Shown one piece after another: positions 27,058-61,825 of a DNA stretch of 64,000 nucleotides (its first letter is position 1; the number at the start of each line of letters is the position of its first letter). The notes beneath the pieces are model-generated. The model saw nothing but the letters and a program-made list of their open reading frames with translations. It made no database searches and was not told the DNA's origin. Origin of the DNA: Lepidodermella squamata (lineage: Eukaryota > Animalia > Gastrotricha); contig JBLDXI010000006.1 in assembly GCA_047495785.1 (NCBI GenBank), positions 62,001 to 126,000 of the forward strand, in the 5' to 3' direction. A program made the translations under genes and the position numbers.

Positions 27058-29427
27058 TCAAGAGTTCGGGGCCACAAGGTCCCGATTTCCACGGCCAAAT
27101 TTCGAAAATAACTCATCAATGGTGGGCCATTGTAGAATGAAAATTAATGACTGTGACGTAGCCAGTGTAAAAGCTGACAGAGTTCCGAACAAGCCATTCG
27201 GCGAACTAGCGAACACTGAGTAAGCAAATGTGCACAGCAGGAGGGAAGAAAAGGTGAAGAACAGAGCGATTGCCGTACATCGCGTTTCTTTTTTTAGCGT
27301 CAAATGTTGACGGCTTGGCTTGGCGGCAGTTGCTGGGTTGAACCTATTTGGATGTATCTTACCGGATGAAATTCTTGCCAAGTCAGACCTTGTGCTCCCT
27401 CCTCGTTTTCGAGTCGAGCTTACCGCTAAGCTTAGAGCGATCCCGAGCAGGAGGCCTTGCAATACAAGGAGAACTATCGGCGCTTTGGAAACAGCGTTTT
27501 CGTTAAGAAAAGAGCATGTGTAGATGAGCTCGGTCCACACTGTATCGCTCTCCGCTTCGTAAAATGAGTTCGATGACGTGGAAGCTATTGGCTTCGATTC
27601 TCCGAGGTACCAAGCTAGAACTAAGCAAACATCCACCACCACAACTACAGCTATAGCTCTGATAAGAACATTTCGATGTCTAGCATTTTCGACAAAGCGA
27701 TGTAGCCACAGCTTCGCGCCAATCGCTGATGTTAAAACGCCGAAACCGATTATCGTTAGTGGCCCAACAGCTAAGCAGAAGATGCCAAGCTTTTGTAGAT
27801 TGGAACCTTCAATTGGATGGAACAAAACTGCAGAAGCCATCAGGGTCGAACCTAGGCAGGTGATGAAATCGAACACGTTCGACGTTTTCAGTATGTACCC
27901 CAGTAGTTGTAGCAGCCATTTGGCAGATATGGTAATAACGGTTGCGGAAATCAAGCCGCTGACAGTATGTTCCCGGACGACATTCTCATGGTGAGCGAGC
28001 AAGGGTTCGGTGCGAAGCACTGATCCTTTGTGCCATCGCAATGGCGTTATTTTCTCGAAGTACTTCTCAGGGTCGGAAATGCTGCGATTCCTTGCGATAA
28101 GAACGGCACTACGGGCGCCCTGATACAGCTGTTCAACTGTAATAGGAGGGTTTATCGATTCATCCTCTCCTGGTAGAAATGCTGCTTTTCCAAGCAATCC
28201 AGTTGCTTCTACGTTCACTGTCCTTTGTCGTATGAGTTCGGTTAATTCAAATTTCCTACGCCTGTCCATGATTATTTCTTTCAGACTATCGTTTCGTTTG
28301 TTAAGTTCGAGCTCGGCGTTGTGAAGAATTCTTGCACCAATAACTACGTCATCGAAGCACATCATTCGCCAAGAGAACGTAGGGTCATTCTCGAAATTCG
28401 GAACCTTCAACGACAAGTATTCATCTAGCTGCCTGGCGGTTATACCAATCTGACTTTTGAAGTTCTTAGACTGAGAGGTTGCAAGAAAGTCCGGCCCTAT
28501 GTACAGCGTGTATTCAGCGAATTCCTGGACCATTTTCCGTGTGCAGCCAGGTGGGAGAATTCCGTTGACTACGTCAATCCATGAATTGAAAATCCAAACT
28601 ACGTTGCGTCCCCACAGGCCTTTTCGATAGGCCTCACATGCCATAGCTGGACAAAAGTTGACGTAGCAGTTGCCGTAGATGACTCGAACATCAGCAGACT
28701 TCAGTCTGGCTAGAGATTCCCGCACCCCCGCGTCGTCCATGTAAAATTCCTCCGCAGCGACTTTTTTCCCAGCTCCGAGAATAGCCTTCGCGAAATAGAT
28801 CGCGTCATCATAAGTTGTCTGGACAGCATCAGCCAGGTATCCCATGCGATTCCAACCCAAATAAAGCATCAGCTTAGCTCTAAATTTCTCGACCTCGACA
28901 AAAGATGGTGCGAAACGGTAGAAATTCGGGTACAGCTTTCGATTTGTAAACTGAGGTTCGGTGCATCCAATCACGACATTGATGAATCCGTAGTGTTGGG
29001 GCAACCTAGCGGCTGTTTTACAGGCTGGCGAGCAGATTCCACCGAGATAGAGAGGCGGAACGTAAGCCTCTCCGTTGAATTTTTCTCTTAATGGCAACGT
29101 CAAGTTGCCGTAGACTCGCGAGCTGTTAACGACCGGCTCTAGGTTTTCGTAGAATTTCAGCGCCATTTCTTGAGCTGCAATGGCCAAACACTGGTCATCG
29201 CCCATGTCGATTTGCAGCTTGTAATTTGGTAGAATATCGGGGCTTGAATTTATTGCCTCCAGGACAAGTGTTACAGCCTCAGTGCACATTGGACCCATGC
29301 TATTGACTGGGCCACCAATCGGAGCACTCATTGGGACTTTCAAGGTGAAAGGCTTCTGTGCGCAGGAAATCATTGGAATCGTCGCCAAAATTGCAGTGAC
29401 CCACCACATTTGTTGTAGGGAAATCAC
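27058..29427 (-). CDS. GABA-B-receptor-like class C GPCR, intronless, intact
   Basis: Signal peptide, Venus-flytrap motifs (INSSPDILP.YKL, DDQC, YPNFYR, ADVRVI) directly linked to 7 TMs (AKLW, D..L.AW) with no Cys-rich domain. Confidence 0.9.
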   Translation of the reverse strand: MISLQQMWWVTAILATIPMISCAQKPFTLKVPMSAPIGGPVNSMGPMCTEAVTLVLEAINSSPDILPNYKLQIDMGDDQCLAIAAQEMALKFYENLEPVVNSSRVYGNLTLPLREKFNGEAYVPPLYLGGICSPACKTAARLPQHYGFINVVIGCTEPQFTNRKLYPNFYRFAPSFVEVEKFRAKLMLYLGWNRMGYLADAVQTTYDDAIYFAKAILGAGKKVAAEEFYMDDAGVRESLARLKSADVRVIYGNCYVNFCPAMACEAYRKGLWGRNVVWIFNSWIDVVNGILPPGCTRKMVQEFAEYTLYIGPDFLATSQSKNFKSQIGITARQLDEYLSLKVPNFENDPTFSWRMMCFDDVVIGARILHNAELELNKRNDSLKEIIMDRRRKFELTELIRQRTVNVEATGLLGKAAFLPGEDESINPPITVEQLYQGARSAVLIARNRSISDPEKYFEKITPLRWHKGSVLRTEPLLAHHENVVREHTVSGLISATVITISAKWLLQLLGYILKTSNVFDFITCLGSTLMASAVLFHPIEGSNLQKLGIFCLAVGPLTIIGFGVLTSAIGAKLWLHRFVENARHRNVLIRAIAVVVVVDVCLVLAWYLGESKPIASTSSNSFYEAESDTVWTELIYTCSFLNENAVSKAPIVLLVLQGLLLGIALSLAVSSTRKRGGSTRSDLARISSGKIHPNRFNPATAAKPSRQHLTLKKETRCTAIALFFTFSSLLLCTFAYSVFASSPNGLFGTLSAFTLATSQSLIFILQWPTIDELFSKFGRGNRDLVAPNS

Positions 29428-30151
29428 TTTGGCAAAGCTTGCTGTAAGGGCTTCTATGCTATTTCAGAAAGTATCTGGCTAGACATATGGTCTGTATTAG
29501 GTTTAATGCATCTTAATCTTAATCTTAAGTGACTTGATGGAAGTTGACGTGACTTTTCCTCTCATTTGAGGATGTAACTAGCTACTTATCACTGGACACA
29601 CGCCATTCTCGTGACCAGATCGATTTCATAGAAAATCATGCGGGCTAAAAGTATAAACACAGACGCTTATGGTATTTGACGTATATCGTGACCACATTTA
29701 TTGGGAGTTGAGAGCTAATTGAGGTTTGTTTTATTTTATTTGTTAATGCTGGTGTATTAAAGCGATCTGCTGGAAATCTTTGATGATCTCCTAAAAAGAA
29801 CTTCCTAAAATGATTTTGCATCATTTACCTATATCAAACTGTTCCCGGCTTGTTTTGAATTCTAAACAAAAAACCTGTTTGGAAAACTGTCGTCTATCGC
29901 GCATATGTTTTATCAAGGACGAAAGTTAATAAAACTGCAATCACAGGCGGATAAACTGATTTTTTATTAAAACTGCAAAGAAAACATAATCGCAGGTTCA
30001 TAATCACGCACTATTAATCTCGAAGTTCAATAATAAAGCCATCAAGACGCTTGGGGTACGAAGAGCGTATATTTTTGTGTAAGAATAATCTTGAGTTTGC
30101 GTATAATTTATCTTCTCCATCTTCTCCTAAAAACTAGAGATAACTAGAGAG

Positions 30152-33100
30152 ATGCACATTCTCCTCATTATGCTACCCATCATGGACAATGTCTCAGGAT
30201 TCGGCCCGCCTTTACTATTGGTGCCTTACAATCGACAATATGGCACAACCAATATTGTGAATGGGTCGAAAACGCTAATAATATATGAAAGTCATGCTTC
30301 CTCAGCTGGCGTTATGCCACAAGCAGGTCCATTCGGTTACTTCGACAGCGCCTACACCGTCTCGCTAGGGGGGTCGTTGTCCACTTATTATTTAGAAGTT
30401 CACTCCTTCGAAAAACGCCAGCGAACAATTTCGACGTTCTTCTTCACATACGCCTCATCAGACCGACTGGCGAGAGGGATCGTCGAGTTTCGAGAGATGG
30501 AGTTCATAATTCGCGTCAGGTTTCAAGTTGCCAATTCTAGCGTTAACATAAGCGCACACAAGCCATACGATGGTTTCCACTCGTTGCAACCCATATCGAT
30601 GACTGTTGATAACGCATGGCAGCCGAGAAAATGGCACTTTATAGCTGTTGTCAGCCACAACGAATCACATTTTTCGGTATTTATGGGTGTCGAGCCGGCT
30701 TACGAACTCGTCAAGCTGGCAACTCTTGATGCAAGTGCTTTCAACGATCCTCAAAATAAGCCTATGCCATACTACATTCTGAAAATCGGTTTTATAGTAT
30801 GGGATATTGTAGTAAGCTTTGGTGTCACTTTCGCACATTCGCTGAACGATGACATTTTTTCAGGGAAAATTGGACACTCATAACGGAGCAACAGAAGGAT
30901 TCTCTTGCTTAGTGACCTACAATACGTCACTGACCCATCAGCAATTGACTTCAATCATCGATGGTTGTCGTGGTCTAAATGAAGAACTAATTTCAAAGCA
31001 AATAGGTCTCGTTTTAAAATTTTTTCAAGCTCTCGTATTCAATGATACTCAATGCAGTTGAAATTGTTGGGAAAATGGTGTATCAAGGCCTCGATTGGCC
31101 GCGAGCAGAAAAGCGTCGAGCAATCAAAGATCACGTGAGACAAATTTATTGACAACTTCAAGCCCTGGACCCCTAACCTAAAGATATTTTACTATTTTCA
31201 GTTGAACGAGATCTTGGGGAACATCTCTTACGGCCCACCGGATTCTTTCATAGCGAAACTTGAGAAGGGCATAGGCAATACCATCATTGCAACGTTTACG
31301 AGCATTATCCAACGAGCATATCCTTTTAATGCTAACCGCAGCGAAGAAAGTGTCTTGGAAGAATTAAGTGATTTAATTGCGAATAAAAACATCACGCTTT
31401 CATCGGCAACGCAAGGTGAGCTATAGAAGATGACCTGAAAATGCGGTTATTCGAAGTTTTAACTTGTAGCGGTGCCAATGCCAAGATCTTTCTCGTTGTT
31501 GGGCTTTTGGCCTATTGCATTGTACCATGGCTTTTACGATTTGGGCCCTCGTCGCCTGACGAGCAAGCCTTTGATCGAACAGCCTTCTTTTCCCAAGCAT
31601 GGCATTTTTGATTTCGCGGGCGTGTGGTTCAGCAGCCAAGTTTTCAAAGTTGACGATTTCGAGATCCCAATGCGATCTACCTCGGGTTTTACTGTATCCT
31701 TCTTCTACCTTTATGACCAATCTTTCCCCGGTATGAGGGGGATTGTCGAATTTCATCCGCACTCGGTCGTTTTCGGATATCAGGATCCTGGTGCTTTAGT
31801 TATCGAACTACCAGGCTGTATCATAGTAGCACCAGGTATATTCCCCAGATCGGAGTGGACTTTTGTAGGATTCGTGTTCTCCGCAGAGCCAAACACGCCG
31901 TGGCTAACAATTTTCAACAATTTCACAGCTATATTCGTTGTTGGAAAGCCGCCAAGCAACGATTTGGCGAAAACTTGGTGGTCTAAATCATCAGGATTCA
32001 CTGTTGGCTCATCGAACTGGACAGCAATGCCTCATGCGATAGCCGCGCTTTCAATTTATGACGGCAAGCTAGCGAGAGATGAGCTGTTCGCCGTTCAAGA
32101 TGCAATGCGTTACACCATATCGCGAGAAACATGCGGTATTTCCTCGAAATTATCGGAGACACCAGTGTCGCCTGTACAAAAACCAACATTTGCTGATAGT
32201 GGTCTATTCCCGTTTATTACAATCTCCAAAGGACAGTGTATATTCTCGTTGCTGACTGATAGAATTGTTATAACGAGCTATTCTTGCCGGGAAATGCTTA
32301 CGTCAAATTTTACTGGCAAGATCTCAAATGGACTCGTTATAGCACAGTTCGAAAAACCATACCCCAACATGAACGTTTGCCTACCGACATGCTGCAATGA
32401 AAAGATCTTGTGGAATGGTGACGCTTATATTGTTGGGCTTCGGGGGTCCAACTTTCTGGCATTACGCTACATTTCTGGAATACTAGTATCTCAATCCAAG
32501 TGTCATCGAAAAAATATCAGCGAGTCACAGCAATCAGACGGACCATTTCTATGCTTTCAAACGAAGCACGAACCCCTCTCACCCTGCGATTTACTCCCAG
32601 GTTCGGCTTTGCTGCTGACCATCGATAGCGACAATGCAACCCAGCTTGGAAGGAGATTTGTTCTCGTAATAGGAATCCTGAAAATCAACCTGCATCTATT
32701 TTTGATATTCTGTGTAGGCCGGCCTATACCTCGATGATCTCAGCGAAACTTGCGATTCAGGACCTCCCATCAAATTCAGGAACACTTTCTGGATGAGTGA
32801 ATGGATAAAAACTACTGCTGGCTGCCTCAATGTTCCGGCAAATCAGCCGTGCCCCTACATCTACGAGTGGGAAAACGTAACTGAAACTTTCACCACTGGA
32901 GCTGTTGTTGAAGAGAAAATACCGGTATCTGAAACAACAACACCGAGTTACGATCAACAAAGCTACACAGGTTTCTACTGATTTTTTATCATTGGCGGAT
33001 TTAAGGACAAATCGTCGTCGGCGCGTCAAAATCCCACTCGCGATCCTGAACTTCATTCGCGAAATTCTTGCTTATAATAATTCCGAATCAAATGAAAAAT

Positions 33101-36100
33101 ATTCAGAAATGATTAAAATAAAATAAAGAAATTTTTAAATATATGTTTTTTCATTTAATTGACCTTCACATTATTTTTGCGGGGTTTGCAGCCCGACGGT
33201 TTGGCGGTTTGGCGGTTTTCGGCATAAACCTTAACCTGTCCGCTGTTCGCTGTTGTTAGAAGTTGTTGCTGTTACCTTCTTGAGCATTTTGCTACGACAT
33301 GACAGTCGCTTAAAGGCCAGATAAGCTATCTCGTAGTGAAAATTGCTGTTTCGAGTTAATGATTACTAACATCTTGCCTTGGCCGATGGATGGAAGCAGC
33401 ATTTTGATAGCGCTTGGTTCAGATATCGTTCATCTCGCTTGATCAATACTGAAGTGCTTTTTGTCCAAGTAGCTACGTGTCAGCGATTATACTAAACGCT
33501 TGTTTCTCAGCCTGGGAATGTCTTCAATTGCTGGTATCACTAATATCGGCTTTTGCGCCCAAGCTTGGCCATCAGCATTATCACCATTGTCATTGTTTAA
33601 TTGGTTTTGCTTCAATAAAGGCAAACCAGCTTGCAGAAGTCTGAGCTAGGAAGTGTTAATGGCTGCGGGCATTTTGTTTTTCATCTAGCAAAGCCAGGGT
33701 GATAGACTGCTGCTATTAGAAACTTGAATACTCAATTAACCTGTATGGCATCTATCATGCGTTTCAACTTGATTCTTTCAATGTTCTGTAATACTGCTTC
33801 TCCATTAACCTTCTCAATGACCAGAGTCAACTATCAACTATCAACAGTTAGTGATAGTTGAATGTCATTTGAACTCAATCTAAAACCAGGTTTAACTGAT
33901 CAAAATCTTGTTTTGCTTGGAAGAAGACTTGATCTCACTTAGATCCACAAAGATTGGTGCGCATTGTTGTCTTTCTTGATGAACAATGACTTACTCGCGA
34001 GACTTATTGCCATCAACCGGAATGGAATCTGCATCGTTATGATTGAAGAGTATGGATTTTCAATGGGGTCCTGTTGCCTTGTCCCTAAACCCTGCTCCTT
34101 GCGTTGATTAAATCATTTTTATTAATATTGAAAATCAAATATTTAGATGAACGCGTTTAAACCACTGTGTTTAATTGTTTTATTCTTCGGCGCCGTCTCG
34201 GCGGCCGTGTTTTGTATTGATAAAACAGGTTATTTCATTCCGTTACTTCTCCACAAATGTTAATCTATATCGGTTTTTAGAGGAGAACCTGGCCGCCTGT
34301 GCTGTGGGCGAGGGCCCTTGTGGGCCTTGGTGCCTAACTGCTTCTGCAACCACTGCACCTAGTGCAACTACTGCTGCAACCACTGTACGTAGTGAAACTA
34401 CTTCTGCAACGCATGAATTCACGGGATTCGCCGGATTCAGTATGTTTACTTTCTTAACGGTCGAATTCGAATTTATTTGGAATGTATCAATTATAGAGAT
34501 CCGACATGATTTGGTCGATTTGGTCGAGCTCCTCCTGACCGCCGTCTCCCTGTTAATTTTTGGATTCGCAATTGTCATCGGCGCCATCACCGGCGTAAAA
34601 GCCTGGTGGGACGGGCGGCGAGCGGCGGGCCAGCTTGTTGCCGCCGCAACTTCGGGAGCACTGCAGGCAGTCGAGGCGGTCCAACCACTCATCGAACGAA
34701 TCTCTATTCCTGTCGAGGCGATCGCTGCCATGCAGCCCCAGCTGGAACGTGTCCTGTCTACACAGCCTAAGTTGAACAAAGAGCTCTCCAGTCTGCTTCG
34801 AAGCCAGGTCAACCACGGCGGCAGTACGCCCCACCTCCGTGGCAGAACGGAAGTTCTTTCGGTCCCGCTGCTTGACCAATCTCGCTCTTCTAGAAGCGGC
34901 TGGAAAATAGTAAGCTTTATTGCCTAGTTTTTATCGCATGTTTGCATGTGCATGTCATTTTCAAGTCGAACACTTCGCAAACTGTTCGCTGAAGAAATAC
35001 GAAAATTGAAAATACGAATTACGAAGATGAGAGATCCAAAGATGAGAGTGAAAGATCCAAAGAAGATTGATTCGATTGATCCAAAGACGTTTGATTCGAA
35101 GAAGATTGATTTGAAGAATGAAAGATTTTCAAGACGATGAAATGATGCACCAAACTAATGCTGTTTTCTCTTTATAGGTTTCTTGACTACTTATTCAGAA
35201 AGTAAGTATTTGAAATTTAATTGATGCAGCCAGGCATGGTTGAAGCTTTGTCGATGCAGCCAGGGAAGTTTTTAACATCAGCGCTTGTGTACTAATGCTG
35301 GTTTTTTTATTTTAATCACGTGCAGTTGTAGAAATTAATTCTCGTTTTAGATGATATTATTTTACTTATTTTTTCTATAACGCTGAGGCGAATAATCTGG
35401 ATTTACTCATCGGATTCGGCGCATTGATTGCGGTTGCTTTGTGTTGCTTGGAGGGTGTAAATTTCTGGATCAGGCTGAGAAATTAGTATTCGGATTTATT
35501 TGGAGTGTATCAATTATATACATCCGAAACAAGCCCCAATATCGGTGCAACACAGTGGTTCGTTGTCTATTAATCTGACAGCGAGGCGATGTAACGTATT
35601 GCCGTTTTTTTAGAAACAAATTTCTGATTGTCTTGCACGAGAGCCAGTGGTACCCGCGAGAAAGGGCGATGAAACGCGCTGCTCAACCGATCTATTATGC
35701 CGGGCTTCACTCCGGATTTCACTGTTTCAACTGATCTCATTCATGGTAATCTGCCGTGATTACAATTTTCTGATTACAATTGTAACATTTTTCGTTCGCC
35801 TAGATCATCAAAGCCACGTTGGGCAACTGCTTGGTTACGGGACAACTGGAATTTTATGACCTATCGAACTTCTTCTCATTGATTTTAAGCTGTTATTTAC
35901 AATGAAAACAACGGAAGTGATCAAATAAAGTTAATTTATTGATTCAAATTCGTCCTTATCTTCCTCGCTTGAATCATCGTCGCTTAAATCATTCACAATA
36001 TCAAAAATGACAGCTCGTTCGTCAAATCTATTGAGATCATTTCCAAGCACATCACGCCGAATCGGGTTTACAAAGCGACAAAATTGCAGAGGGTGACCAA

Positions 36101-39100
36101 GTTGTTGAAACAATGTAAATTTGTCAACAGCTTCAGTTTTGACAAAACACTTGAGATTTTCGAGAGATATTTGAGCATTCAGGCGGCCGCGTTCATGGTA
36201 CTCATCACTAGTCATCACTTGCCCGCATCCTGAATGAAAACTGCTGAAACAAGCTGGGTCTGATATTACAAATTGAGCTTTCGAAGGATTCGAGTTGGCA
36301 TTTTCAACCCGAGAATTTTCTTTTATTGCAAGCTTTCGAACAGGCACGCTCATCGTAGCATATTTTCCAACGGAATAAATAATTTTCAGTAGCAAGTTGT
36401 TAGCCACATCCAGAACAAGTAGAGAGATCGCTCCAAGTAACTTCACTACGTACTTGAAAAGAAAGCTCAAAATCAACAGCAGGAATAGTAAAGCTGTAAG
36501 GTACAAACTTTTGTGGCCACCGCTGGTGTATACGATAAGAAATCCGGCAATGCGCAAATATACACCCATCAAGCATGAAAATCTAGTGTTTTCAATCGGC
36601 TTCGAAAGATAGAATAATGTAAAACCCACGAATGCCGATAAGATCAGTGAAATGAACACAAAATTGACACAAATTTGTCGAATGTAAGCAGCTAATCGGT
36701 GCAAAGCTAGAGTTGAGCTTAAAATAGTTGCTATGAACGCTGATGGCTTATTATTTCTGTAGCTCGAAGAAAAAAATCTAACAGAGCAAAAAACGAAAGC
36801 GATTATCGACGCTAGTACGGCCAAGATGGAACCAGTTGAATAAAACAAGAAGGGCCTCTCCGCCAGGTAAGGTGAGAAAAATACTAGTGCTGAACCGATC
36901 AAAATGAAAGCTATAAAAGAGCGAGAGAAGGGCATGAATGTGTAGGAGATTTTGTATTTCGAATCAAAGAAGCAGACGGCAAATTGAACTCGGCGGTATG
37001 GGTCAACAGCAAACTTCGAGTTTCCCAACAAACGGTCGAACATTATTGATTTCGAATAGTCCAGGACTGTATCCATAACGTTCGAAATTGAGCGCGTGGC
37101 ATTTAAACAACTGACAGTAATAAATTCGTCAGTATCTTCTGCCACCGAGATCACGACTGGTTGGGGAGATACATGCGAAGAATCTAGGCGAATAAACTGA
37201 ACCTAAATGAGGAAGTTATTTCAAATTTAGACTCGAATAAAATCTTCAATAGATAACTAACTTGACCATGCTGCCAGAAATCCAACAGTTCGTCCTGTTT
37301 GACAGGATTGAAAACGAAAACGTCAATGCTGTTAATCCCTGGCTCGATGACGGCTGACAACGAATCGGAAGAGCCAATTTCATAGCGATTGATTGAAACA
37401 AGCCCTAGAACTGGTTCGCCAAGGCACGAGAGAAACAACAACAGCGACATGACTAGGAGCTGAGAACTGTGACTATAGGCTGACATCCAGGGTCTCCAAA
37501 TTGCGTACGGGTCGATAAATCGAATAAAAATTGCGTAAATTCGAGCGAATTCGTATTGCTTTCGATCGATAGAAGGCGCAAATGAACGACGCCAAAACTA
37601 TCACTCCGATAGCCAGTAGAATTGACACAACGACCCAGTAGTTGGGAGTTGGGAGTGATAACGGTAGTGACGAGTCAGATTTGACCGATGAAGTAGGGTG
37701 GATTTGCGCCTTTGGATTGCCCTTGTTGAACAGAAACCAGTTTTCAAACGAAAAATCCGGGGATGAATTCATTTGAAGCGATAAAATTAATTAAAAAGCC
37801 ATGGTAATGCATTCAAATCTAGATTCTAGAAAATTGATAAAAAATTGAGAAATTAGCCCATTGAAGAGAAATAAATTTAATCAAGTCACACGACAATGAC
37901 AAATATAATTTTGATAAATAATAAATAATTTTTTTTGAGGTCTGCAAAACAATAATAAACAAATGGCCACAATAAATTTCTTTGAGCTCTGTCCAAGAAT
38001 TATAAATTATTATCACTTCCGTTCTGTGAAGCTATCCTGATATTCGTGGAAAGCTGATTTTTATCGAACAAGCGTCGAAGTTCAGATCAGCGCCATCGGA
38101 TGCTTTGTGAGAGTTCATCATCATCATTCGTCGTCGCCGAAGTGGTCATCGTCATCGTCATCATCGGCGTCTTCAACATCATTAACATTCGCCCCCAGCA
38201 TTAGATATTTCTGTCGAACGTCGGCTTTTCTCTTTTCAATCTCAGGCTTCTTCATTTTTGAAGGAATCTCGCCAATTTTGTCGAGATAGGGCAAAGGTAT
38301 AGCACCTACAAATCAAATTTAAATACATTTCGGAGACAGAAATATAAATGACCAAGCGCTGAATGAAATTCGATGAAAATAGGCAGACTCAGAATTAATT
38401 AGCCGAAAGATTTTAATCAAATAACCGATTTCTTGCTGTTCCAAATTTCGCAAAGTTCGCTTAATACCATGTTCCTATTGCTAGGATTTGTGCTCAAGAT
38501 CAAATTCGACCTTAACTACTAATTTGGGAGAAATTTCAACTCACCTTCTTTCACCCATTTGAACATGTCCTGCATTTTCTTGGAAGTGAGACGGAGTTCA
38601 CTAGCCACTTTAGGCGGATAGGCCATGGTTTTCTTATAGGTGAACTTCTTATTGGAATCCGTGGCGTCAAACGCTTCGTAAGGCGTTTTGTAGTCCCAAT
38701 CTTGCTTACCTTCGAGCAAGTTGTAATTATCGGTATACCTATAGCAGGAGAAGCGATTAAAAAGTCCACGTTGGCCTTTCGCGACAGGTAGATCGAATCT
38801 TTCTGTATAACTGGGCCCGTGTTTCGCGTTATGAAATTGACCGTGCTTCATTTCGCGAATGATGAAAGGCGGATCGCCGGCAATCGATGCACCCAAAATG
38901 GCGTCTAAAAAAATACAATTTGAAAAATAATCGAAAAAATCCCGACGAATTTAGCAAACAACTATCTAAAAATTTTCATTGATCACGAATCTTTAAATCA
39001 AGGCGAGCGAGCGATCTAAGAACTAAGAGTCGACAATTCTATTCGATACAACGATGGATTCTACCTCCAGAAAGGATCTTTTTAGTTAAGTGAACACCTG

Positions 39101-42100
39101 AAGTAATCCGGGACAAATACAAGTAGTTATGCCCGTGAAGACGAGCAAGAATCAGCGGTGATCTATGTCCAGGCAAGATTGTTGCTAGCTATGGCTGCTG
39201 TTCTGTTGGCTACGGCATGATTGAACACCAGGTGAAAGAGTACGTAGGACGAGCAAGAATCAGCGGTGATCTATGTCCAGGCAAGATTGTTGCTAGCTAT
39301 GGCTGCTGTTCTGTTGGCTACGGCATGATTGGACACCAGGTGAAAGAGTACGTAGGACGAGCAAGAATCAGCGGTGATCTATGTCCAGGCAAGATTGTTG
39401 CTAGCTATGGCTGCTGTTCTGTTGGCTACGGCATGATTGGACACCAGGTGAAAGAGTACGAAGTCCCTGTCACCGACGACGGCCTGTGCATCCTCGAGTA
39501 TGAATTGCAGCTGCAGACACGGCGATTACGCCACGGCTGTTATGTACGGACTAGTCATAACTTCCAGACTCGCCTTTTGGCATGAAGAACAATGAAGCAC
39601 GAACGTGAAAGAAACGAATCAGATTCGCGGCAAAATTGCATTCTCAGTCGATTCAATCCGTGTTTTAATCGAAATTCTTATCTTTACCATCCTTATCCGG
39701 CTTCGATTTAGCCAACGAGGGTAAGAGAGGTAACCATTTCAGAAGAAGGAAGCGAATAGCCCAGCTGTTAAATTCGCCGGTCTCAACTCGGAAACGTGAA
39801 GTCAAAGCAATTTCGCTAGAATATCCCGAAAAATTAAGGCGGATTACGTGACAAACGGCCGCAAAAATTCTCGAATATTCGCCGATTTTCGAAAGTTGAA
39901 TAACTGATCGAATTTCATCGATAATTCCGATTTAAATTCCGAGTGCAGTTTTCCGATTTCCGAAAAGACGCTTTCATCAGATTAGAACAAGTTCAACATT
40001 TCAGACCGGAAATTAGAATGAACAATCGGTTCGGTTTCTGCCAAACGGTAGTCAGTGAAACGCATTCTTCTCTTTATTGCGAGGAAGTTGAGCAGGGGGT
40101 TCGGCGGCAGGGTTAATTTGCAAGCGACGCGCCTCCGGTGTTAATTAAGATGATGATAACAGCCTGGATAAACCTTTTACGCCCTAGGTCATCAGGTTCG
40201 AACAACTCACTCGGCGTCAGGAATGAATTGAGTTAAGGATTAATTCCGCTGTCAAGCTACTATTCAAGCTACTATGAACTTCTATGATCAACGATTCAAT
40301 TTCGAATAATTTCGATAATCCTTAATTATTGGCTTGAATTCAACAATAACTTCAAGTTCAGAATTACTTCTCCAGTCGGTTGGGAATGCCAAGGTGCGAA
40401 TTCGTCGCGCATTCCGTTCAACGGCGCTATGAATTGTGTCGCAGGGTTGCTGAGAATGTCCGACCTAAAGGCAGGTACAATAAAAGCAGGTTTTAATAGA
40501 ATAAGCACGATTCACTCATCTCTCCCGCACTTGAAATAGCCAGGTGCCACGTACAGGTGCTAACTATGTACTAATATTGGTGGCAAGTTGCGGATCATTT
40601 CCGGATCAGAACTCGGTTAATTTCCCAGCAAAAATATTGAATTAATCATCGGCCTCCTTTTTAAAGCAGGTCCAAACTTAAAAGTTCCCACAGAAAGCCC
40701 AGGACAACCTACCTAAATAAGTCAAAACCAAGTTGCACTATAATTGAAGGGGACCTTGATATTTTCTACTAAACATAACGTCACAAGAAAGTGCTTGCTT
40801 GCTTACCACAAAAAAGCGATGTTCAACTGTTCGCAAGGCTCTTCCAGATGCTTTGGCCTCTTGAATGGCCAAATACAGAAAATTCGGAAAATAAGAGTTC
40901 TTGTTTTGACCTAAAAAAATTCAGAAAGTGCAAAATCTCAACGAAAAATTAAGCTAGCTCCAACCTCCAGCGCTATCTGACCACAAGTAGACATGTTCGA
41001 CATCAGGACTCAAGGTCTCCGTTAAATACCTAAAAGGAAAGCAGAATAATTTTGCGCTCAAGCCATTAACACCTACTTTAGAATGCAAGTTCCAACTTCA
41101 GATACGCCTTTTTTCCTAGAAAAATATAAGCGCTTGATGAAATCTCGCTTAATTGTAATTCCAATTACCCTTCATACTCCTCGAATAAATAGTGAACGGC
41201 TTCGCGGGTTACCACATTTAAAACGGTAATATCCCGAGTCTGGAGCTTCGAGTGATACCTAAAAAACACAATGATTCAAGCATTTTGAGAATCGAACTAT
41301 TGAAACTTGCTTAAATTGACAGCAGGGAGTTTCGAGATTTTTCATGAAATCAAAATTGATGACAGCTATTTTGCCGCCACTATTCTTCGCTCTTTCCACA
41401 TCCTGAGCTAAAATCCTCCTAGCGCGATGCTTTCGCTTCATGTGCTTCTCCAGCAGCTTTTTCAGCCGTTCCTGGTTCGGCTTCGAGTCTGTTTTCGATA
41501 GGGATTCAAGGCGCGCGCAAAATTTGCATTTATCAACCTGTGCCAACAGAATGAGTTAAATAATTTACCCCATTTATAAATAATCAATTAAAGAAACCTT
41601 TGGTCTTTGGAAAGCGAGTTTCGGAAAACATCGTTTGAAGATCTGTTTGAAGGTCGTAAGTGAAACGGGCTGATGCACATGCGACTTGCTAGATGTCGGC
41701 GCAGTGCTAGCGAACTCTCTTTGCAGCTTTTCTTCCTGCTCAACGTATTCGCGATGAAGAGAAGCTAAAGAATGAAAGGAATCGATGTAGTCCTTGTCCG
41801 AAGAAGCTCTTTTGTAGTGCGATGGAAGCTTCTCAATGCTCATAATGAATGAAGTAGCGGAATCAAGACGTTCTTTAGAGATCTTCCCAACGCCTTTTTT
41901 CTTCCCGCGGCCATCCGGAGCAATAACAGCTCGAAACTTTGTTTGCTTATTCATCAAGGTGTAATTAATGACATCGAAGGAGATTTGCAGCGCATTTGTA
42001 AAAAAGTAACGGCAAACCTATAACCGAAAGCTTTAAATATAAAATGTAGGAATGATCACTATACCGACCGGCTCGTCATAGGGCCTGTTATGCATTGTCT

Positions 42101-45100
42101 TGTCCAAGGCAGCTTCTGATGGCAGTCGGTACCGGTAATAGCAACGCTGTTTACCGTTCTTCACTGTCATTTGCGAAGGAATTGACACAAAGCGAGCGAT
42201 GAATTGCCTGCGATCTTTGATGTCACCTGAACGCCAGAATTCCTTGCACAGCTTTTTGATTGCTTCGTCTGTGAACTTGGTGTAGCATTTTTCCGGACAC
42301 TTGCAAATAACACGCTTCCCAATCTTAGCCCGAACCATCTTGGCAGGCCGAATAATTGTGCCATCTCGCGATTTCTGAGCTCGCTTGAGGAACTGCTTTC
42401 CACTGTTTCTCAGCTTGAACTCGCGGTCTCTATTACGGGACTAGAAATGCAATAATGACAAGAGATACAAATTGCTGGAAATTCAAGCTTACCTTTCTCA
42501 CTCGTGGATCGACATGAGAGGGAAGCTTCGGTTTAGCCAATTCGCGTAAATGTCGTGGCAAAGACGGTGCCATATCGACGCCTGCATTTAATAAATTTCC
42601 TACAAAATACAACAACACAAATTTATATTTATTGAACATTCGGCATTGAGATGTCGGTTATTGAGAAATACTTTCCATTAAGTTCCATGAGAATAATAAC
42701 AAGAGAGCGATAAATCTGTTCTTGAGCTAAAACAGGTTGGCATCCATGATGATTGAAAGGATCTATCGTTATCAGAGATCAGTTGATCAGAAAGCCAATG
42801 ATAAAAAAATTTATTATAAGAAACGAAAGGCAAGATTTTAAAGTGACTAAAACGCAAGCAAGACGACAGCCAAATTATTTTCAAAACAGGCAAGAGAAAC
42901 GTGATTGGCGGTGAAGGTAGCTGCTAGCTGCGAGACTGGATTAAGCGCGCCTCTGTCTCGTCGATCTGATGGGAAAGTTGGCGAGGTCTTTGGCCAACTG
43001 ATCGGTCTGAGCATACTTCCGAGGATTATTCTCCTTATCGGTAAGAGCATAGACCATCAGATCGTTCTCCTGATTTACCTCGACCGGTGTAGGAGCAGTA
43101 GCGACCTTGCCTGACAAGAAAGCTGGCCATTTCAGCCATATTGGGCGGCGAAATAAAGCAGCCATGGCTTCCTCACGCTTGCAAGCCCAATATGCATACG
43201 CTAGAAGTACATAACGCACAATCAGCACAATTAGATGAGCGTCAAGGCCAGCATCGCTGATCGCCTCAGAGGATTGCGTAATGTACCATTCTATCGCTGC
43301 CATGGGGAAGAAGCTAGACGTGAGCAGGCAACGTTTGAAGGTAGCGGAAAAGAAAAACAGCGACCAATAAAACAACGTTTGGGTCTCAAAAAAATCCTCA
43401 GTGAAGACTGGAAACACTTGCGATAACGCGGATTTAACAGCCGCCGTTTCAAAAGAGCTCTCGAGGGCTTTTTGGGCCGATTGGTAAGACTGAAGTACGG
43501 ACTTTTTGAAGAGCAAGTCGACAAAAAAGTGTTGAGTGTACTCGCTTACAATCTAAATGAGAATTATAAAGCAAATAAGTACAATTTATCCGTCAGAATT
43601 TAATACACACTAACCGGGGTCCAGGGCGATTTCGTGTAGTTGAGGTAGCAGCAGACGGCGCTTGCATCGCTATAAGCTTCAAGGAGAGAGCTCAAAGCTT
43701 CATGATTTCCGCTAACCTTTGGCAGCAGCTTAGCTATAGTTGGTTTTAGTGGCAGTTTGTCATCGGCCTTGGCTTGGTAACAATTATACAGCATCGAGGC
43801 TAAATGGGTCCGGCTGTCTTCAGGCAAAGGCCATTTGCAGCCATCAGAGGCAGTGAAGGTCAGCCAAGCCTCGACACAAGCCTTGCCGGTGCCTTTGTAT
43901 TTTTTAAGGCGATCCATCGACCGAGAACCAGGCTCTTTGTCGCGAAAAGTGCAGCCCTTGAGTTTATCATCGACCTCCTCCGACTTGACACCATCAAACA
44001 CAGAGACGGATGACGGTTTCATTGATGGTAACTCGGCTATTTCATCATTATCATTATCCCCCGAGGGCTCAAGTCTTCCCGCTCCCGGCTCCGCCTTCTC
44101 AAACTTAGCGAGAACAGCATTGACAGTGGATAACACATCCTTGTTGTCTTTGTCATGCTTAAGAACAGCTGCCAGGGTTTCCAGCACATTGAGCGCGCTC
44201 TGAGTGTTTGTAGCAGCTGTGGTTGTCTTAGTCCTAGCTACAGAAGTTGACGATCTGGACGGGGATGGAGTGACGCTGGCTCCGACGACGATGGAAGACG
44301 GAATAGTCGTATCTGTTTTTACCAATGGTTCGGTAAACCAATTGGCGCGCTTGAACAGTTGCTTTGCATTTGGATGAAGAGCAAAGCAGCACAAATACTC
44401 GGACTCTCCGTACAACCAAGTGAATGTCGGAAATGAAACTTCGTCGACTTTCGCTGCGCAAGACTTTAGGGTATCCGCCTTAGGGCTGCAGGTCCCCTTG
44501 CTGTAGCAGTCGAACAAAGACAGTGCCCTGACAACGCGGAGCGAAGTTTCACCTGAGCAACCACAGATGCCGGCGGTGCTTTCCATTAACTTCAACTGTT
44601 CAGTAAGGCAGGACCTGAGGTTAGCGTCCTTCAGCTGAGCAACCTTTTCGTAGAAGCGATGGCCATGCGAATACAGCAACTGCCAATCGGTCGCAATGGA
44701 AGTGGCAGGTGCTGCAGTTGACGCCAACTTGGTCGGTTTGGTTGCTGATGCCGTGGCGGACTTGCTGCTGGTTGCTTGCGTAGAAGTCGACGGGGATAAC
44801 GTACTAACTGTCGTGTCAGCTGTAGCCGACCCATCGTCTTCGTTATCAGCTTCATCACGTCCATCATCGCCGTCAGGTTGACCGTTTTCCTGTTCTTGCG
44901 GCTTTTGATCTCGCTTTAGGCGGATATGACTGCGGAGCAAGATCGACTCAGGGACGGACTCTGAGGCGTCCTGTGCAATCAACCCAAAGATGAGCAGCAC
45001 GGCAAGCGGAATAACTTGCATATCAATAAATTTAGCCGATAAATCTATAAAAGTGGAAAATAACGACACAAGTATCAATTGTTTTATGCCTGCAAGATAT

Positions 45101-47137
45101 AATGTTGCTGGCCAGGCTTCTTAAGACTTGTAAAGTGAGGGAGCGAGATAGCAAGCATCTGCCGACTGCTTAGCTAGTAAATGATTGAGGGATACTTCTG
45201 ATCCATCTACTGTAATGAAAGCATCCAGCAGTTGGCCATGATGTCAATGCGCTACTACGATAGTTTCCCATCGTCGGGGCAATGTTTGCTTGGCATCCCA
45301 ACTTTCTAATAATAATAATAATTTCGTTTTCAAAGCGAACTTCAAGGACCAGAAGGGCATGCCACTTGCTCTAACGCTAGGTCTTAACGTAAGTGAGAGA
45401 TATGAACATCGTAAGACTGAGTTTGACTGGTGCAGTCTAGCTGACACTCCCAGGTTCCCAATTTACTATTTTGTAACGCCATTGATTGGTAACACCACCG
45501 ATGGAGACTCGATCCTGGTTCCATCACTAGGACTTGAACCCAGTCCCGAGCGATATCCCCTCAGATACACAGTTGCTCATCGACCCAACTAAGCCACCGT
45601 GCCTCTTATTCTACCTACTCATCTCTGGCACGAGTATTGAACTCCCAACTTGTAGGTATGGAATTGATTGTTATGGGAATTGGTTTCATTGTCATCGATT
45701 TCTGGCTAATTCAGCTGCAATTGCCAAGTGCCAAATGCTGCTATAAAACCAGACTGCAATAACGATAACTGTAAAAATTTGCATGTTTGCATATTCTCGC
45801 CTCATCTGGGACGCCATCTTGGATTTTGCCTCTTTTTTGTTCCCTGTGAAGGTTAAAAGCCAGGAAAATGATATTTTCATTTTATTTTTATTTTATCAAA
45901 CATTTAAATATAAATTCACTCATTATTAATTATTTCTGTTTAAATTTGTTTTCGCGTGGTTTTCAGGCAGAAATTTGCGAGTGGGATTTTGACGCGCCGA
46001 CGACGAAATTATCTTTCATTTCCCGGTTAGCTGTACTGATTGCGATTATCCTGGGTGTTACAGCCGTAATGACTATACTGGTCATAGTAGGCGTGATCTT
46101 GTACAGAAGGAGGTCTAAATCTTTGGTAAAGCGATTCATCGGCATGTCATTTGAGTCTGAAGCTGCTGATGCTGCGAACTACATCGAAGCTATAGCAGAC
46201 CTATCTAGTCTTCTGAAGGACTTGCCGCAGGCTGAAGAACTCATAGAACAGTTCAAGCCTATCAACATTCAGCCCGAAAGGATCCAACTGAATGAGTTTG
46301 TTGGCGAAGGTCAGTTCGGCTCCGTTCATCGAGCCAGTCTTAAAGACTTTGATAGCAACAGCGAAATCAAGATCGCAATCAAGAGTGTCAAACCAGGTTC
46401 CGCATCAAAATTGACTGATTTTCTAAGAGAAGCCCTCATCATGAAAGATTTCTCTCACCATAATGTTCTGCCCCTTATTGGAGTAGCTGCCGTTAACGGC
46501 ACGCCATGCATCGTTGCTACGTTCATGGCTAAAGGCAGTCTAGATCAATTTCTGAAGAAAACAGACGATGACCGGACTGAAGCGGTGCTTATCGACTACT
46601 GCCTTCAGATTTGCCGTGGCATGGTCTATCTTTCATCGAAAAATTGCCTCCACCGAGACCTCGCTTGCAGGAACGTCCTGGTCTCGGATGATTTCGTGTT
46701 GAAAATCAGCGATTTCGGAATGTCGCGCATCCTCGACACCGATAATGTTTACTACAAGCTGCAAAACAGTGGTGGTGAATTGCTGATACCGATTCGCTGG
46801 TACCCTCCTGAATCCATCGAGCAAATGAAATTCGGCCCGAAAAGCGATGTTTGGTGTTTCGGCGTGACGATGTGGGAAGTATTTTCAGGTAAAACCTAAT
46901 GATCTCTCAATACACCTCCAATATTCATTTTGCGTACTAGAGTGCAAATCGATCCCGTATGAAGGACTGGACACGTCATCAGTGGTAGTTCGAATCACGA
47001 CTGGTAAGGTGCTGGAAAAACCCTTGAAATGTCCCGAGCCAGTCTACGAGAAAGTGATGACAAAATGTTGGCTGGAAACGGCGAGTGACCGCCCATCGTT
47101 TGAAGAGCTGGAAGGAATGATTGTAGAGAATGACTGA
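30152..47137 (+). CDS. Receptor tyrosine kinase: SP, LamG-like, SEA-like, LamG-like, pseudo-trypsin, stalk, TM, kinase
   Basis: Approximate exons 30152-30811, 30864-31005, 31058-31134, 31202-31415, 31470-32665, 32718-32970, 46031-46888, 46941-47137 splice in frame. Kinase has GEGQFG, IAIK, HRDLACRN, DFG and PIRWYPPE. Removing the transposon leaves a normal 63-bp phase-1 intron. Confidence 0.82.
34147..34927 (+). CDS. Cargo: type I membrane protein with small Cys domain and Thr-rich stalk
   Basis: ATG at 34147 gives the signal peptide MNAFKPLCLIVLFFGAVSA. Phase-1 introns 34229-34280 and 34440-34496 splice in frame. One TM (LLLTAVSLLIFGFAIVIGAITGV). 3' end uncertain. Confidence 0.65.
35931..37486 (-). 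CDS. Cargo: NEMP/TMEM194-like nuclear envelope integral membrane protein
   Basis: Signal peptide and an in-frame intron at 37261-37203. LVFFSPYLAERPFLFYSTGSILAVLAS matches the NEMP TM1-2 motif. MTSDEYHERGRLNAQISLENLK...HPLQFCRFV matches the conserved C-terminal NEMP region, followed by an acidic tail. Confidence 0.85.
37473..37772 (-). CDS. Cargo: 99-aa single-pass membrane protein
   Basis: Clear TM (WVVVSILLAIGVIVLASFICAFY) followed by a basic stop-transfer segment. Overlaps the first NEMP ATG by 14 nt. Confidence 0.55.
   Translation of the reverse strand: MNSSPDFSFENWFLFNKGNPKAQIHPTSSVKSDSSLPLSLPTPNYWVVVSILLAIGVIVLASFICAFYRSKAIRIRSNLRNFYSIYRPVRNLETLDVSL
38124..42573 (-). CDS. Sola1-type DDD transposase, 11 exons
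   Basis: CKC..KC...F, VCRYFF..ALQIS, DGRG, SHYKR, F.RPK.DKC..C, FDFMKNL.TP (D1), WSDSAGGQNKN (D2), GHSQQPCDTIHSAVER (D3), PF.I.EM, and an acidic tail. All junctions are in frame if intron 4 uses a GC donor (~41310). Confidence 0.88.
39140..39460 (+). repeat. ~3 x 108-bp tandem repeat encoding a DM9 (DUF3421)-like fragment, inside a transposase intron
   Basis: Near-identical units start at 39140, 39248 and 39356. They translate as YVGRARISGDLCPGKIVASYGCCSVGYGMIEHQVKEY(EV), matching DM9 YVGR..PGK..YEV. Confidence 0.85.
42941..45021 (-). CDS. Cargo: GEX1/KAR5/Brambleberry-like membrane protein with two Cys-rich domains (~672 aa, 2 exons)
   Basis: Signal peptide from MQVIP and an RLKR site. CRD1 is SC...C...R...ALSLFDC...TC......SC..KVD.....F.....E...CC. 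CRD2 is AC...C...R..LA..LYNC...AY..A.AVCCY. An in-frame intron (43614-43553) joins an exon with ~3 TMs. Confidence 0.7.
45305..45642 (-). mobile_element. tRNA-derived SINE-like element nested in the Sola1 element
   Basis: On the minus strand: A box TGGCTTAGTTGG (45596-45585), B box GGTTCAAGTCC (45540-45530), an (ATT)n tail near 45307-45322, and flanking 9-bp direct repeats tcccaactt. Confidence 0.6.
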
Positions 47138-48076: not shown

Positions 48077-51000
48077 TAGATGGTCGCCGCTATGCAGGAC
48101 CACGTCAAACTCTGAGCAAGCTTGCCCAGGAGAGTATCGTAGGGCTTTTTCGGAACTTCATTTAGAATCGCACTTTGCATTACGGTCATCGTTAGAAGGA
48201 CCGTAACTGAGAAAGCAGCTCGATCTGGCGCATCAGGTGGCATCAGAAAAAGAAACAAATTCAGAGAGGCGAGCGTCGATGAAGGGACTGCAAAGTTTTT
48301 GATGTGATACCCTGGATTTCTCGCAAGTTTAACCGCGAACTTGAACGTGGACACGTAAAAGCCCTTGCAGAAAACTTGACCTGAAGAATTTTCAGTCGAG
48401 ACCAGCGTCCAACTGTCGCCTACACGGGAATGGTTAAAATCGAACAGAAGTTTTTCTTGATCTACTCGAACAATATTGCGGCCTTGTTCGAGGGAGAATT
48501 CGAAATCGCACGTTTGCATGTCCAATGGGAACAACTGAAGTGACAGCTCGCAGCTAGCCTCAAACAAACCCTCCTTTTGCCAATAAAAGTCAAATAGGTT
48601 CTATTGGTTGTTGGCACTTTGGAGGACATCATCATCAAATAGTCGTCATTGATAATCATGTTCCGCATTTGAAGGTTAGCATTAGCCGCCGATAGAAATC
48701 GAATCTTTGGCCGCCACACATTGGGCAAATTGTCGATGTAGACAGTCTCGAAATTTCGGCCAGTTGGAAGGGCGGCCAAAGACCACCACGGGCACGTATT
48801 CACCCGCCAGTGCAGCACCATCAACGCTTTCACAGTTATAATTTCGCTAACTGTGTCGATTTCATTTAGGCCGTTAATTTGAAAGCCAACTTCGATTTTC
48901 AGCGGGGCGTCAGAAGAATTCACAATATTTCTAGGTGCATGTACTGAGGCGTTGAAATTGGCGCAGTTTCGCTGTATCGAAGTCACGTCGATGTAGTCAA
49001 AAGTTGGACCCTCAAAGAACGGCACCATTCGCTCAGCAATTGAGGTCCCGCTGACATAAGTAGTTTGCTGCGAGAAAAGTCGACCGCAAGCGTTGCTGAG
49101 ATTGAAGACTTCATCATGGCTCAATGCGGCGTTGAAGAAATAGACGCAAGCAAATTGCGTTTCTGTTTCAGGTTTGCCAAAGAGTAAATTTAAAGATTTC
49201 TCCCCGGCGTATCCGATGCCTATTTCCATCGAAATATAATCCATTGACACGTTTGCGACTACCGGCGGGAAATGTTCGTCGTTGAAGACCAAGCAATCAG
49301 CAGAGATACCTAGGCAACATAAATTGAGCAACCCTCAATAAGGTTGAACCAGTGAAAAATTGAAGAAATCAACCACTATCTAGATAGAGACTAATAAAAT
49401 AACGTCGCCTATCGGACTCTAAATCTAGGCCTGAAATAGACTTGATGAGTATGCTGTCCCCAGCGTTAATTATTTCTATTCATTTACCTGCTGACCATGG
49501 CTCGTAATAAATCATATGAGAGTACGTTAAGCAGTTGTTATAAGCGTCATCGCTTGAGGTGATGGCGTAGAAAGTCCAAGATCCGGGTTGGTGATATCTC
49601 ACGGTTGATATGACTTCTTGCGAAAACACAGTCATCGAGTTTGCATTCGATATTAGACGGATGTCAATATCCGCTTCAGAGCCTGAAGCGGTGCAAGAAA
49701 CTGAGAGGAAACCGAATATTGTAACAATTCCATTCCCCATCCCATTGTCATTGCATAGCGATTTGATGTAGAACGACAGGGTGAAACCCGAACGCGGCCT
49801 CGGTAGGTTGTCGTAGGCAACCAACCCGTCGAATAAACCTGCGTGCCAGTCAGTATAATTCCACGAAACGCTCCCTTGCCCATAGGGCCCTTCAAATTTT
49901 ATCTCATTCACGTTATAAGAACTTGGCTGGCGGGGTAAGATGGCGTTTCCAGCTCCGTCCCACCCGATTAGCTTCGAATCATACGACAGCGGCCAAAATC
50001 CAATTAGATTCTCCAGCCGAGGAATGCTTGTCATATCTACTCGCGGCTCTATCTCGCCCATTGTTGCTTTAGCAGCGTTGAGACACGGTTTTAGAAACAA
50101 CGATTTCACCTCTTCTGCAGCCAAAGCGACTTTGTACAAAGCGACACATGAAACTTTGAACTCAGAGGTGAGACGAACTGGTCTATGCAGCCATTGTTTT
50201 CGTTTTCCGATCACGAATTCTCGCCGAGTATCTTTAACGTAAAGTTTAGCCGGAACCGTGTAATTTTCACTGAATAGCCTCTGATCATTTGTTCTCATTC
50301 GATAGAAAACAGCCTCGTTCGACGACTTTCGATACGTGAAAGCCAACAAATTGCTATCCCCTGAATTGTTGTCTGGTTCATCGGAATCTTCTCCGGCAAG
50401 GTACCAACTATCAGCCCCAGTTCGCAATGAAATTCCAGCTCTAAACATCTCGAATATGCCATCGAATTCGATCGAGCCAATTTTGTAACTAGCATGTACA
50501 GAAACTGTGAAAGAACTCGGAATTTCGGGTACCGAATAACTGGCGATTCTCGTTCCGCTCGTCGAATCGTAATAACCAGTGTTGCGATGAAATGTGGCTG
50601 TGCTGTTTGTCGGCTGTGTGTCTCTTCGTTTGAAGTTGTGTATCCAGTGAGACCCGAGTAAGCGTCCATAGGCCAGAATGCGATGAGTTGGTCCAAGCGT
50701 GGCAGTTCGATCTTGGAAACATCCAAGCCGATGGTACAAGTAGACAAACTACTCAGAACCAGAATATGACCGCAAAGCATGTCTTTAGTCTTTAGTGCAT
50801 TTTCTCAGCAGGATGACAATTGTACAAAAGCAACTGAAGGTGAAAAATTACGGTCACCACGCGTGGGGTTTAATATCCTCGAGCAAACCCTCTAGGTGTT
50901 TTTCCGAAGGGATGGGTAGGTAACAAATCGGCATTTATTTGTACAGTGTAAGATTACAATGAATTGGAATTGTTTGCTCGCAAAATCGATGCAGTTCCTG

Positions 51001-61418: not shown

Positions 61419-61825
61419 CGCTGCAACGAACAAAAACTCTGAAAATCGCAAAAAGTGTTTTTCTCGCTCGCAAAAAAACACAATTTGTTCCGATCAAATC
61501 ATCACACCTGCGGTTTTATTAGCTCCCTCTAGCAATAAAGCTAAGAGAGAGAAGTGCGTTTATTAATTTTGTGTTTACTCAGGCAGCAGCTTCGTTTATT
61601 GAAGTGGCAAGATCCTTTTGAAGAGTCGAAGCAAAAATATCGAATTTCAAGGGCCGCGTGTAATTGCCTAAATTAGGGAGTGGATGCGAGCTGAATGCTG
61701 AATGCTGAATCGAACGTGAGAGAACCAAGAAACAAAAACGGTAGCATTTCAGCTCTCAGCTATCATTTTACTGATTAATGTCGCTGATGAGCTATCAAAT
61801 TTGAAGAATTTGTCTGTCAATAAAG

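Follow-up and report, generated by a model that had tools for sequence, protein, structure and literature searches.

The window analyzed here, a 64,000-nucleotide stretch of the genome of the gastrotrich Lepidodermella squamata (assembly GCA_047495785.1, contig JBLDXI010000006.1, positions 62,001 to 126,000 of the forward strand), contains a DNA transposon of 12,993 bp at 33013–46005. The element, which lies in an intron of a receptor tyrosine kinase gene, ends in terminal inverted repeats (TIRs) of 29 bp and is flanked by a 4-bp target-site duplication (TSD). Between its ends it carries a putative transposase gene, four predicted membrane-protein genes and a triplicated fragment of a DM9 repeat. 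The explanation favored here, with moderate confidence, is a recently transposed and probably autonomous cut-and-paste element of the Sola1 type, in which captured host genes travel as passengers.

Element Ends and Target Site

The ends of the element and the exons on either side of it are as follows.

33009–33012, no strand: left TSD copy, AAAT, read directly and equal to 46006–46009
33013–33041, plus strand: left TIR, 29 bp, complementary to 45977–46005, with 0 chance matches expected
45977–46005, minus strand: right TIR, 29 bp, from the repeat search and mismatch scan
46006–46009, no strand: right TSD copy, AAAT, read directly
32718–32970, plus strand: upstream exon of the receptor tyrosine kinase gene, with a phase-1 end and a donor GT at 32971
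46031–46896, plus strand: downstream exon of the same gene, encoding a transmembrane (TM) segment, juxtamembrane region and Tyr-kinase domain (Pfam PK_Tyr_Ser-Thr, E=1.5e-66)

The repeat search found the two TIRs to be 100% complementary over 29 bp, and it lengthens them to 30 nt (33012–33041 and 45977–46006) because the adjoining bases of the TSD, the T and A of the flanks, pair as well. A scan of the window with the TIR 29-mer at three mismatches or fewer returned just two sites, with 0 expected from shuffled sequences, and no internal TIR copies within the element. The insertion site is an intron of otherwise 63 nt in the plus-strand receptor tyrosine kinase gene: the upstream exon stops in phase 1, the acceptor AG has its last base at 46030, and the downstream exon, whose TM segment is followed by a basic stop-transfer stretch, fills out the split codon. 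Without the element and one TSD copy, 42 + 21 = 63 nt remain, which falls in the size class of all other short introns modelled in the window; short introns in this animal genome, which is of an invertebrate type, measure 50–60 nt. An earlier reading of the sequence by itself, made without database searches and hereafter called the sequence-only reading, had proposed perfect 29-bp TIRs, an AAAT TSD and a 63-bp intron as target, and these features were borne out in full.

The perfect TIRs indicate that the element moved recently as a single unit, and a real and young cut-and-paste element bounded by TIRs and TSDs is present. That there is no mobile element at all, and that the inverted repeat and the AAAT beside it arose by coincidence or through an assembly artefact, would agree with the presence of one copy only in the window. 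However, the inverted repeat is perfect over 29 bp, the 4-bp flanks are identical, removal of the unit returns exactly to a phase-compatible intron of 63 nt, a transposase-like gene lies between the repeats and shuffles yield 0 matches, so the probability of this alternative is negligible.

Transposase and Probable Assignment to Sola1

The minus strand of the element encodes a candidate transposase in a 10-exon model.

38522–42573, minus strand: transposase gene, 10 exons, 626 aa, with a frame open over all exons and GT/GC-AG introns
42573–42493, 42440–42069, 42017–41598, 41537–41311 and 41258–41169, minus strand: transposase exons 1–5
41115–41077, 41029–40965, 40910–40807, 40464–40368 and 38904–38522, minus strand: transposase exons 6–10

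The model comprises 1878 nt, or 626 codons, without a stop. Its introns measure, in order, 52, 51, 60, 52, 53, 47, 54, 342 and 1463 nt; eight are of the GT-AG type and one, intron 4 (41310–41259, minus strand), is GC-AG with the donor GCAAGT, no GT donor there preserving the frame. The N-terminal region of the predicted protein contains cysteines, and three Asp-containing blocks, NFDFMKN, WSDSAGGQNKN and GHSQQPCD, begin at residues 352, 426 and 468, respectively. Read as motifs, outside any alignment or fold, these blocks have the order and spacing expected for an RNase H-like transposase with an apparent DDD triad. The sequence-only reading had described an apparently intact, spliced DDD transposase; the apparently intact frame stands at 626 aa, while the triad is to be taken as a motif reading only.

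Exon 9 is probably joined to exon 10, as suggested by a matching splice phase and by a PPF-x-I-x-EM motif in the last exon, a motif also found in related transposases. A 143-aa open reading frame (ORF) at 38522–38950 was considered as a separate gene and dropped, its sequence being reassigned to the last transposase exon. A read-through of exon 9 to a stop at ~40290, which would give a 524-aa protein retaining the three Asp blocks, was also considered, and the phase-compatible splice to 38904 was preferred.

Of the superfamilies with 4-bp duplications, Sola is to our knowledge the only one that pairs a target other than TTAA with an all-Asp triad. A 4-bp AWWT target is named as a hallmark of Sola1 where PMC3845634 cites Bao et al. 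(2009). Since AAAT fits AWWT and the combination of a non-TTAA target with an all-Asp triad points to Sola, the term Sola1-type is accepted here. The Sola1 label of the sequence-only reading is upheld to the extent that the TSD fits, and family identity beyond the TSD and the Asp motifs is presumptive. A Pfam scan of the transposase exons matched no family, including no transposase model of another superfamily, and the larger exons gave only noise at E<=10; this agrees with the lack of a Pfam model for Sola transposases (PMC5751038). No relevant paper in the literature searched contains GQNKN or similar motif strings.

Cargo Genes

Four genes flank the transposase gene on both sides, three of them on its strand.

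34147–34927, plus strand: 242-aa type-I membrane protein gene, from a gene model, with no Pfam match
35934–37486, minus strand: NEMP-family gene, 498 aa, two exons, from Pfam PF10225, a gene model and hydropathy
37476–37772, minus strand: 99-aa ORF with a single strong TM segment, called on these two features, with no Pfam match
42944–45021, minus strand: 672-aa membrane protein gene, called GEX1/Brambleberry-like in the sequence-only reading, from the ORF and hydropathy, with no family match

All four have a start codon and TM segments, three of the four have a signal peptide, and as judged from these models they appear to be complete genes and not fragments. Open exons of 423 and 506 codons would arise by chance with P ~2e-10 and 3e-12, computed at the element's own stop-codon frequency. 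One short intron is found in three of the genes (62, 59 and 52 nt), and these introns belong to the same size class as the 63-nt host intron and seven of the nine transposase introns (47–60 nt). Similarly, GC content at third codon positions is 0.42–0.54 in the cargo, close to the 0.46–0.63 of host genes in the window. The sequence-only reading had counted four membrane-protein genes with introns of their own; four frames and three introns were recovered, none being seen in the 99-aa ORF.

The NEMP-family gene consists of exon 1 (37486–37262), which encodes the signal peptide, a 59-nt intron with the donor GTTAGT, and exon 2 (37202–35934), which encodes ~5 TM segments, a C-terminal domain and an acidic tail. 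Hydropathy segments of the 498-aa model lie at 8–33, 164–190, 192–223, 245–276, 283–301 and 304–354, and ~140 soluble residues follow the last of them. Residues 92–379 of the exon-2 ORF match Pfam PF10225 with E=3.5e-16 and 60 bits (cut-off 28.7) over positions 9–242 of the 249 in the profile, and so the NEMP-like gene of the sequence-only reading is confirmed. By this measure the protein is a genuine, full-length family member, sharing with the inner nuclear membrane proteins of the NEMP1/TMEM194 family nearly the whole profile, the signal peptide, ~5 TM segments and a C-terminal soluble domain. It differs from that family in its low score and in being encoded inside a transposon. The score of 60 bits is nevertheless unremarkable, because host receptors in the window also score weakly against Pfam: the channel and G protein-coupled receptor (GPCR) ORFs reach 40 and 25 bits. 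The divergence of the NEMP protein is therefore no sign of long residence in a transposon. The NEMP family is needed for nuclear-envelope integrity and fertility.

Of the two small genes, the 242-aa gene is the only one on the plus strand. Its exon 1 (34147–34228) encodes a signal peptide, and after a 52-nt intron its exon 2 (34281–34927) encodes a Thr/Ser-rich ectodomain, one TM segment and a tail of ~100 aa. The 99-aa ORF, whose end overlaps the start codon of the NEMP-like gene by a few bases, is a putative gene, as suggested by its open frame and TM segment.

The Cysteine-Rich Protein and the Kar5 Family

The 672-aa protein is encoded by exon 1 (45021–43615) and exon 2 (43552–42944), separated by a 62-nt intron with the donor GTTAGT. 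It starts with a signal peptide (hydrophobic residues 1–21), followed by an acidic and then Ser/Thr/Ala-rich linker. A first cluster of eight cysteines (138–212; residues 138, 153, 155, 172, 178, 188, 211 and 212) is followed by a stretch predicted to be helical and then by a second cluster of six (357–458). Exon 2 encodes a weak hydrophobic segment at ~528–552 and a strong one at ~569–594.

Defining features of the Kar5 family are a signal peptide, six invariant cysteines within a cysteine-rich domain, coiled coils (one or two) and C-terminal TM domains (two or three), and its sequence conservation is limited to the cysteine-rich domain (PMC4291462). Several features of the 672-aa protein may correspond to those of Kar5/GEX1/Brambleberry proteins (PMC4291462, PMC7586128), namely the signal peptide, an N-terminal cluster of at least six cysteines, a middle region predicted to be helical and C-terminal hydrophobic segments. 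The cysteine spacing is also broadly similar: 15/19/6/10/23, as opposed to 12/23/14/11/25 in yeast Kar5 (C56, C68, C91, C105, C116 and C141), a comparison of number and order only that carries no alignment statistics. AlphaFold2, run without an alignment on residues 145–506, returned a mostly helical model whose confidence (predicted local distance difference test score 41) is too low for it to be informative. Unlike known family members, however, the protein has a second, partial cysteine cluster, a long linker of low complexity that follows the signal peptide and a single strong TM segment, and shows no significant sequence or profile similarity to the family.

The Pfam model Tht1 (PF04163) did not match the protein even at E<=10, and phmmer with its cysteine-rich exon against 1.84 billion representative proteins gave 0 matches at E<=1e-3. 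A word-indexed protein search, which needs shared 5-mers and similar length and is weak evidence when it finds nothing, was blank for the 473-aa exon of this protein, for the 423-aa NEMP exon and for transposase exon 3. Pfam scans at E<=10 of the cysteine-rich sub-domains, the small ORFs and the larger transposase exons returned noise only (Dirigent 0.013, ecTbetaR2 0.22, IL13 0.08). In addition, BLASTP of the two cysteine regions against each other detected no similarity. The GEX1/Brambleberry label given by the sequence-only reading was not borne out by these searches, and membership of the 672-aa protein in the Kar5/GEX1/Brambleberry family, judged from its architecture, is a lead and not a result, conceivable but on the doubtful side.

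DM9 Fragments

A further piece of coding sequence lies in transposase intron 9 (40367–38905), the longest intron of that gene at 1463 nt.

39140–39463, plus strand: tandem array of three 108-nt units, each coding a DM9 repeat fragment, from Tandem Repeats Finder and Pfam

Tandem Repeats Finder gives 3.0 copies with 99% matches, the units being 98–99% identical, and every unit encodes one and the same 36-aa segment of a DM9 repeat. The array matches Pfam DM9 with E=2.3e-22 in three stretches, each covering only positions 7–49 of the 115 in the profile. It has the appearance of an exon fragment that was captured and later, and recently, amplified in tandem. The presence of this array in the transposase intron shows that the element also accumulates foreign gene pieces.

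Copies and Relatives of the Element

With tblastn, the three spliced models found no paralogues in the window outside the element. The collections covered beyond the window were prokaryotic, viral or metagenomic, and three intronless host ORFs had no exact counterpart in the protein collection, from which this genome is thus evidently absent. A scan of Joint Genome Institute (JGI) metagenome contigs with the TIR 24-mer gave one exact match of 25–26 nt, at 387–412 of Ga0187893_10078578. Although this match is longer than expected of a random one, the contig is a GC-rich sequence of 3 kb with no similarity past the TIR match, and the match is taken as a chance-like occurrence. Neither the NEMP exon nor transposase exon 3 identified a related locus in viral contigs. 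In the literature searched, no paper ties Sola elements, NEMP or Brambleberry/GEX1/Kar5 to transposon cargo.

Origin and Role of the Cargo

From the known behavior of the family, the 626-aa DDD-type transposase would bind the 29-bp TIRs, excise the whole segment between them and reinsert it at an AWWT tetranucleotide. In the present case the target would have been the AAAT in the 63-nt receptor tyrosine kinase intron, duplicated on insertion. Everything from TIR to TIR, that is, the four membrane-protein genes and the triplicated DM9 fragment, would travel passively. The cargo is preferably read as host genes picked up by gene capture or transduplication; if expressed, its products would be ordinary membrane proteins of the endoplasmic reticulum or nuclear envelope, dispensable for transposition. 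A capture origin is favored because the cargo introns are of host size, the GC content by codon position is host-like and a DM9 fragment is also aboard, and from these features we infer both the capture and the passenger status of the cargo.

Several observations weigh against this explanation. The element carries four whole genes, whereas described gene-capturing DNA transposons carry mostly fragments (PMC6431247), and the compact arrangement of three cargo genes on the transposase strand fits maintained accessory genes better than debris. The host source gene of the cargo was not found within the window, and the evidence comes from a single copy of the element in 64 kb. Furthermore, the Sola1-type assignment is presumptive, being drawn from the TSD, the TIRs and the apparent DDD triad.

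The compact arrangement raises the alternative that the cargo is a maintained accessory module, in which the NEMP-like gene and a Kar5/GEX1/Brambleberry-like gene, perhaps with the two small proteins, act on the nuclear envelope of the germ cell or zygote. Such a module might benefit the element through nuclear access, by reaching the partner pronucleus or by drive at karyogamy. The NEMP match is real and covers nearly the whole profile, and the 672-aa protein resembles the Kar5-family architecture in its signal peptide, its cluster of six (plus two) cysteines, its low-confidence helical prediction and its C-terminal hydrophobic segments. The reading frames of the cargo genes are open and complete, the transposase shares its strand with three of the four genes, and the perfect TIRs indicate that the element recently moved as one unit. 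Yet Kar5/GEX1/Brambleberry homology is without sequence or profile support, the two cysteine regions of the 672-aa protein are not detectably alike, only one of its TM segments is strong, and a nuclear-envelope function is known for just one of the four cargo families. The DM9 fragment, evident junk, is carried as well, the low NEMP score has its match in host receptors of the window, which also score weakly against Pfam, and searches of the window, metagenome contigs and viral contigs found no second copy of the element. A maintained module is accordingly unlikely, and a nuclear-envelope function of the cargo is speculative. The more specific proposal, that a Sola1 lineage keeps under selection a NEMP-type inner-membrane protein, a very divergent Kar5/GEX1/Brambleberry-type fusion protein and two small partners, which would work in germ cells or zygotes in favor of its transmission, is likewise unlikely.

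Another possibility is that the cargo comprises the host's only functional NEMP and cysteine-rich genes, enclosed between Sola1 ends by macro-transposition or nested insertions, and that the element is mainly a carrier of essential genes. The position of cargo on either side of the transposase gene, as if the ends had mobilized a larger segment or captures had recurred, would be compatible with this, as would the intact genes and their host-like GC content by codon position. However, an unrelated receptor-kinase gene harbors the whole unit in an intron of 63 nt, and the TSD is intact, which makes this a secondary location and not the ancestral locus, and the element has no internal TIR copies. 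Enclosure of resident genes in this way is considered improbable, and passenger genes acquired by capture or transduplication remain the preferred explanation.

Surrounding Window

Other features of the window include a near-identical stretch (…LLLVPYNRQYGT…) common to the ORFs at 1159–1851 (minus strand) and 30131–30880 (plus strand). The latter probably represents exon 1 of the receptor-kinase gene into which the transposon inserted; the former is assigned to an inverted paralogue at the left edge of the window. A segmental duplication joins 11486–12341 and 16042–16933, ~4.6 kb apart, in blocks that are 82–97% identical, and each duplicated segment holds the same minus-strand ORFs (11198–11745 and 15951–16322).

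Intronless genes of a class-C GPCR-like type (ANF_receptor, weak 7tm_3) form a local family at 27061–29463 (minus strand), 57111–59636 (minus strand) and 62269–63999 (plus strand). Further class-C GPCR-like pieces lie at 52963–54183 and 55801–56721 (minus strand), and one paralogue is apparently in two pieces with ~1.6 kb of other sequence between them. ORFs resembling Cys-loop ligand-gated channels, at 60132–61493 and 48465–49334 (both minus strand), match Pfam weakly, at 40 and 21 bits, and proteins of this genome as a whole seem to diverge from the reference profiles. The most GC-rich part of the window contains a reverse-transcriptase ORF fragment (51658–52626, plus strand; RVT_1, E=9e-14), probably from a truncated retrotransposon without long terminal repeats (non-LTR). 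Rfam and tRNA scans of the whole window found nothing.

Comparison With Known Systems

The usual description of an animal cut-and-paste transposon is that of a transposase between two repeats. The present element, apparently autonomous and recently mobile, takes with it four complete genes for membrane proteins of a cellular type. As a minimum, it would represent a clear instance of whole-gene transduplication by an element of the Sola1 type, and with it a route by which membrane-protein genes might be duplicated or spread horizontally. Should the cargo prove conserved across copies, one would have to ask whether transposons can manipulate the nuclear envelope, and a maintained module, if true, would give eukaryotic cut-and-paste transposons an accessory function of a new kind.

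The element shares with Sola1 (Bao, Jurka and Kapitonov, 2009, as cited in PMC3845634, PMC4455052 and PMC10294476) the cut-and-paste form with TIRs, a target of AAAT within AWWT, the appearance of an Asp-only (DDD) motif and the lack of a Pfam transposase match. Among DDE/D elements, those of Sola1 already rank with the longest, having a mean of 5.4 kb in bivalves; at ~13 kb, the present element is more than twice the ~5.4 kb mean of the curated bivalve Sola1 (PMC10294476). It also adds four complete genes, whereas the descriptions of Sola1 as relayed in these citing papers mention a transposase only.

Pack-MULEs and other gene-capturing TIR transposons (PMC6431247) likewise contain host-derived coding sequence between TIRs and are moved by a DDE/D enzyme, and the DM9 array is typical of such capture. 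In contrast to Pack-MULEs, which are non-autonomous and carry gene fragments, this element has an open transposase gene of its own, and the genes that make up its main cargo are whole, with introns and with products that bear signal peptides and TM segments. It therefore falls outside the Pack-type definition, as its main cargo is full-length and the DM9 array alone is fragmentary.

Polintons/Mavericks, Teratorn and Terminons (PMC6431247), as well as KolobokP with its His-Me endonuclease (PMC9587614), also carry more than an integration enzyme, including membrane or structural proteins. Those elements resemble viruses or encode enzymes of DNA metabolism, whereas the additional genes found here encode cellular-type membrane proteins and include no replication or capsid genes. 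What is new in comparison with these systems is an unusually gene-rich, Sola1-type transposon with a whole-gene cargo.

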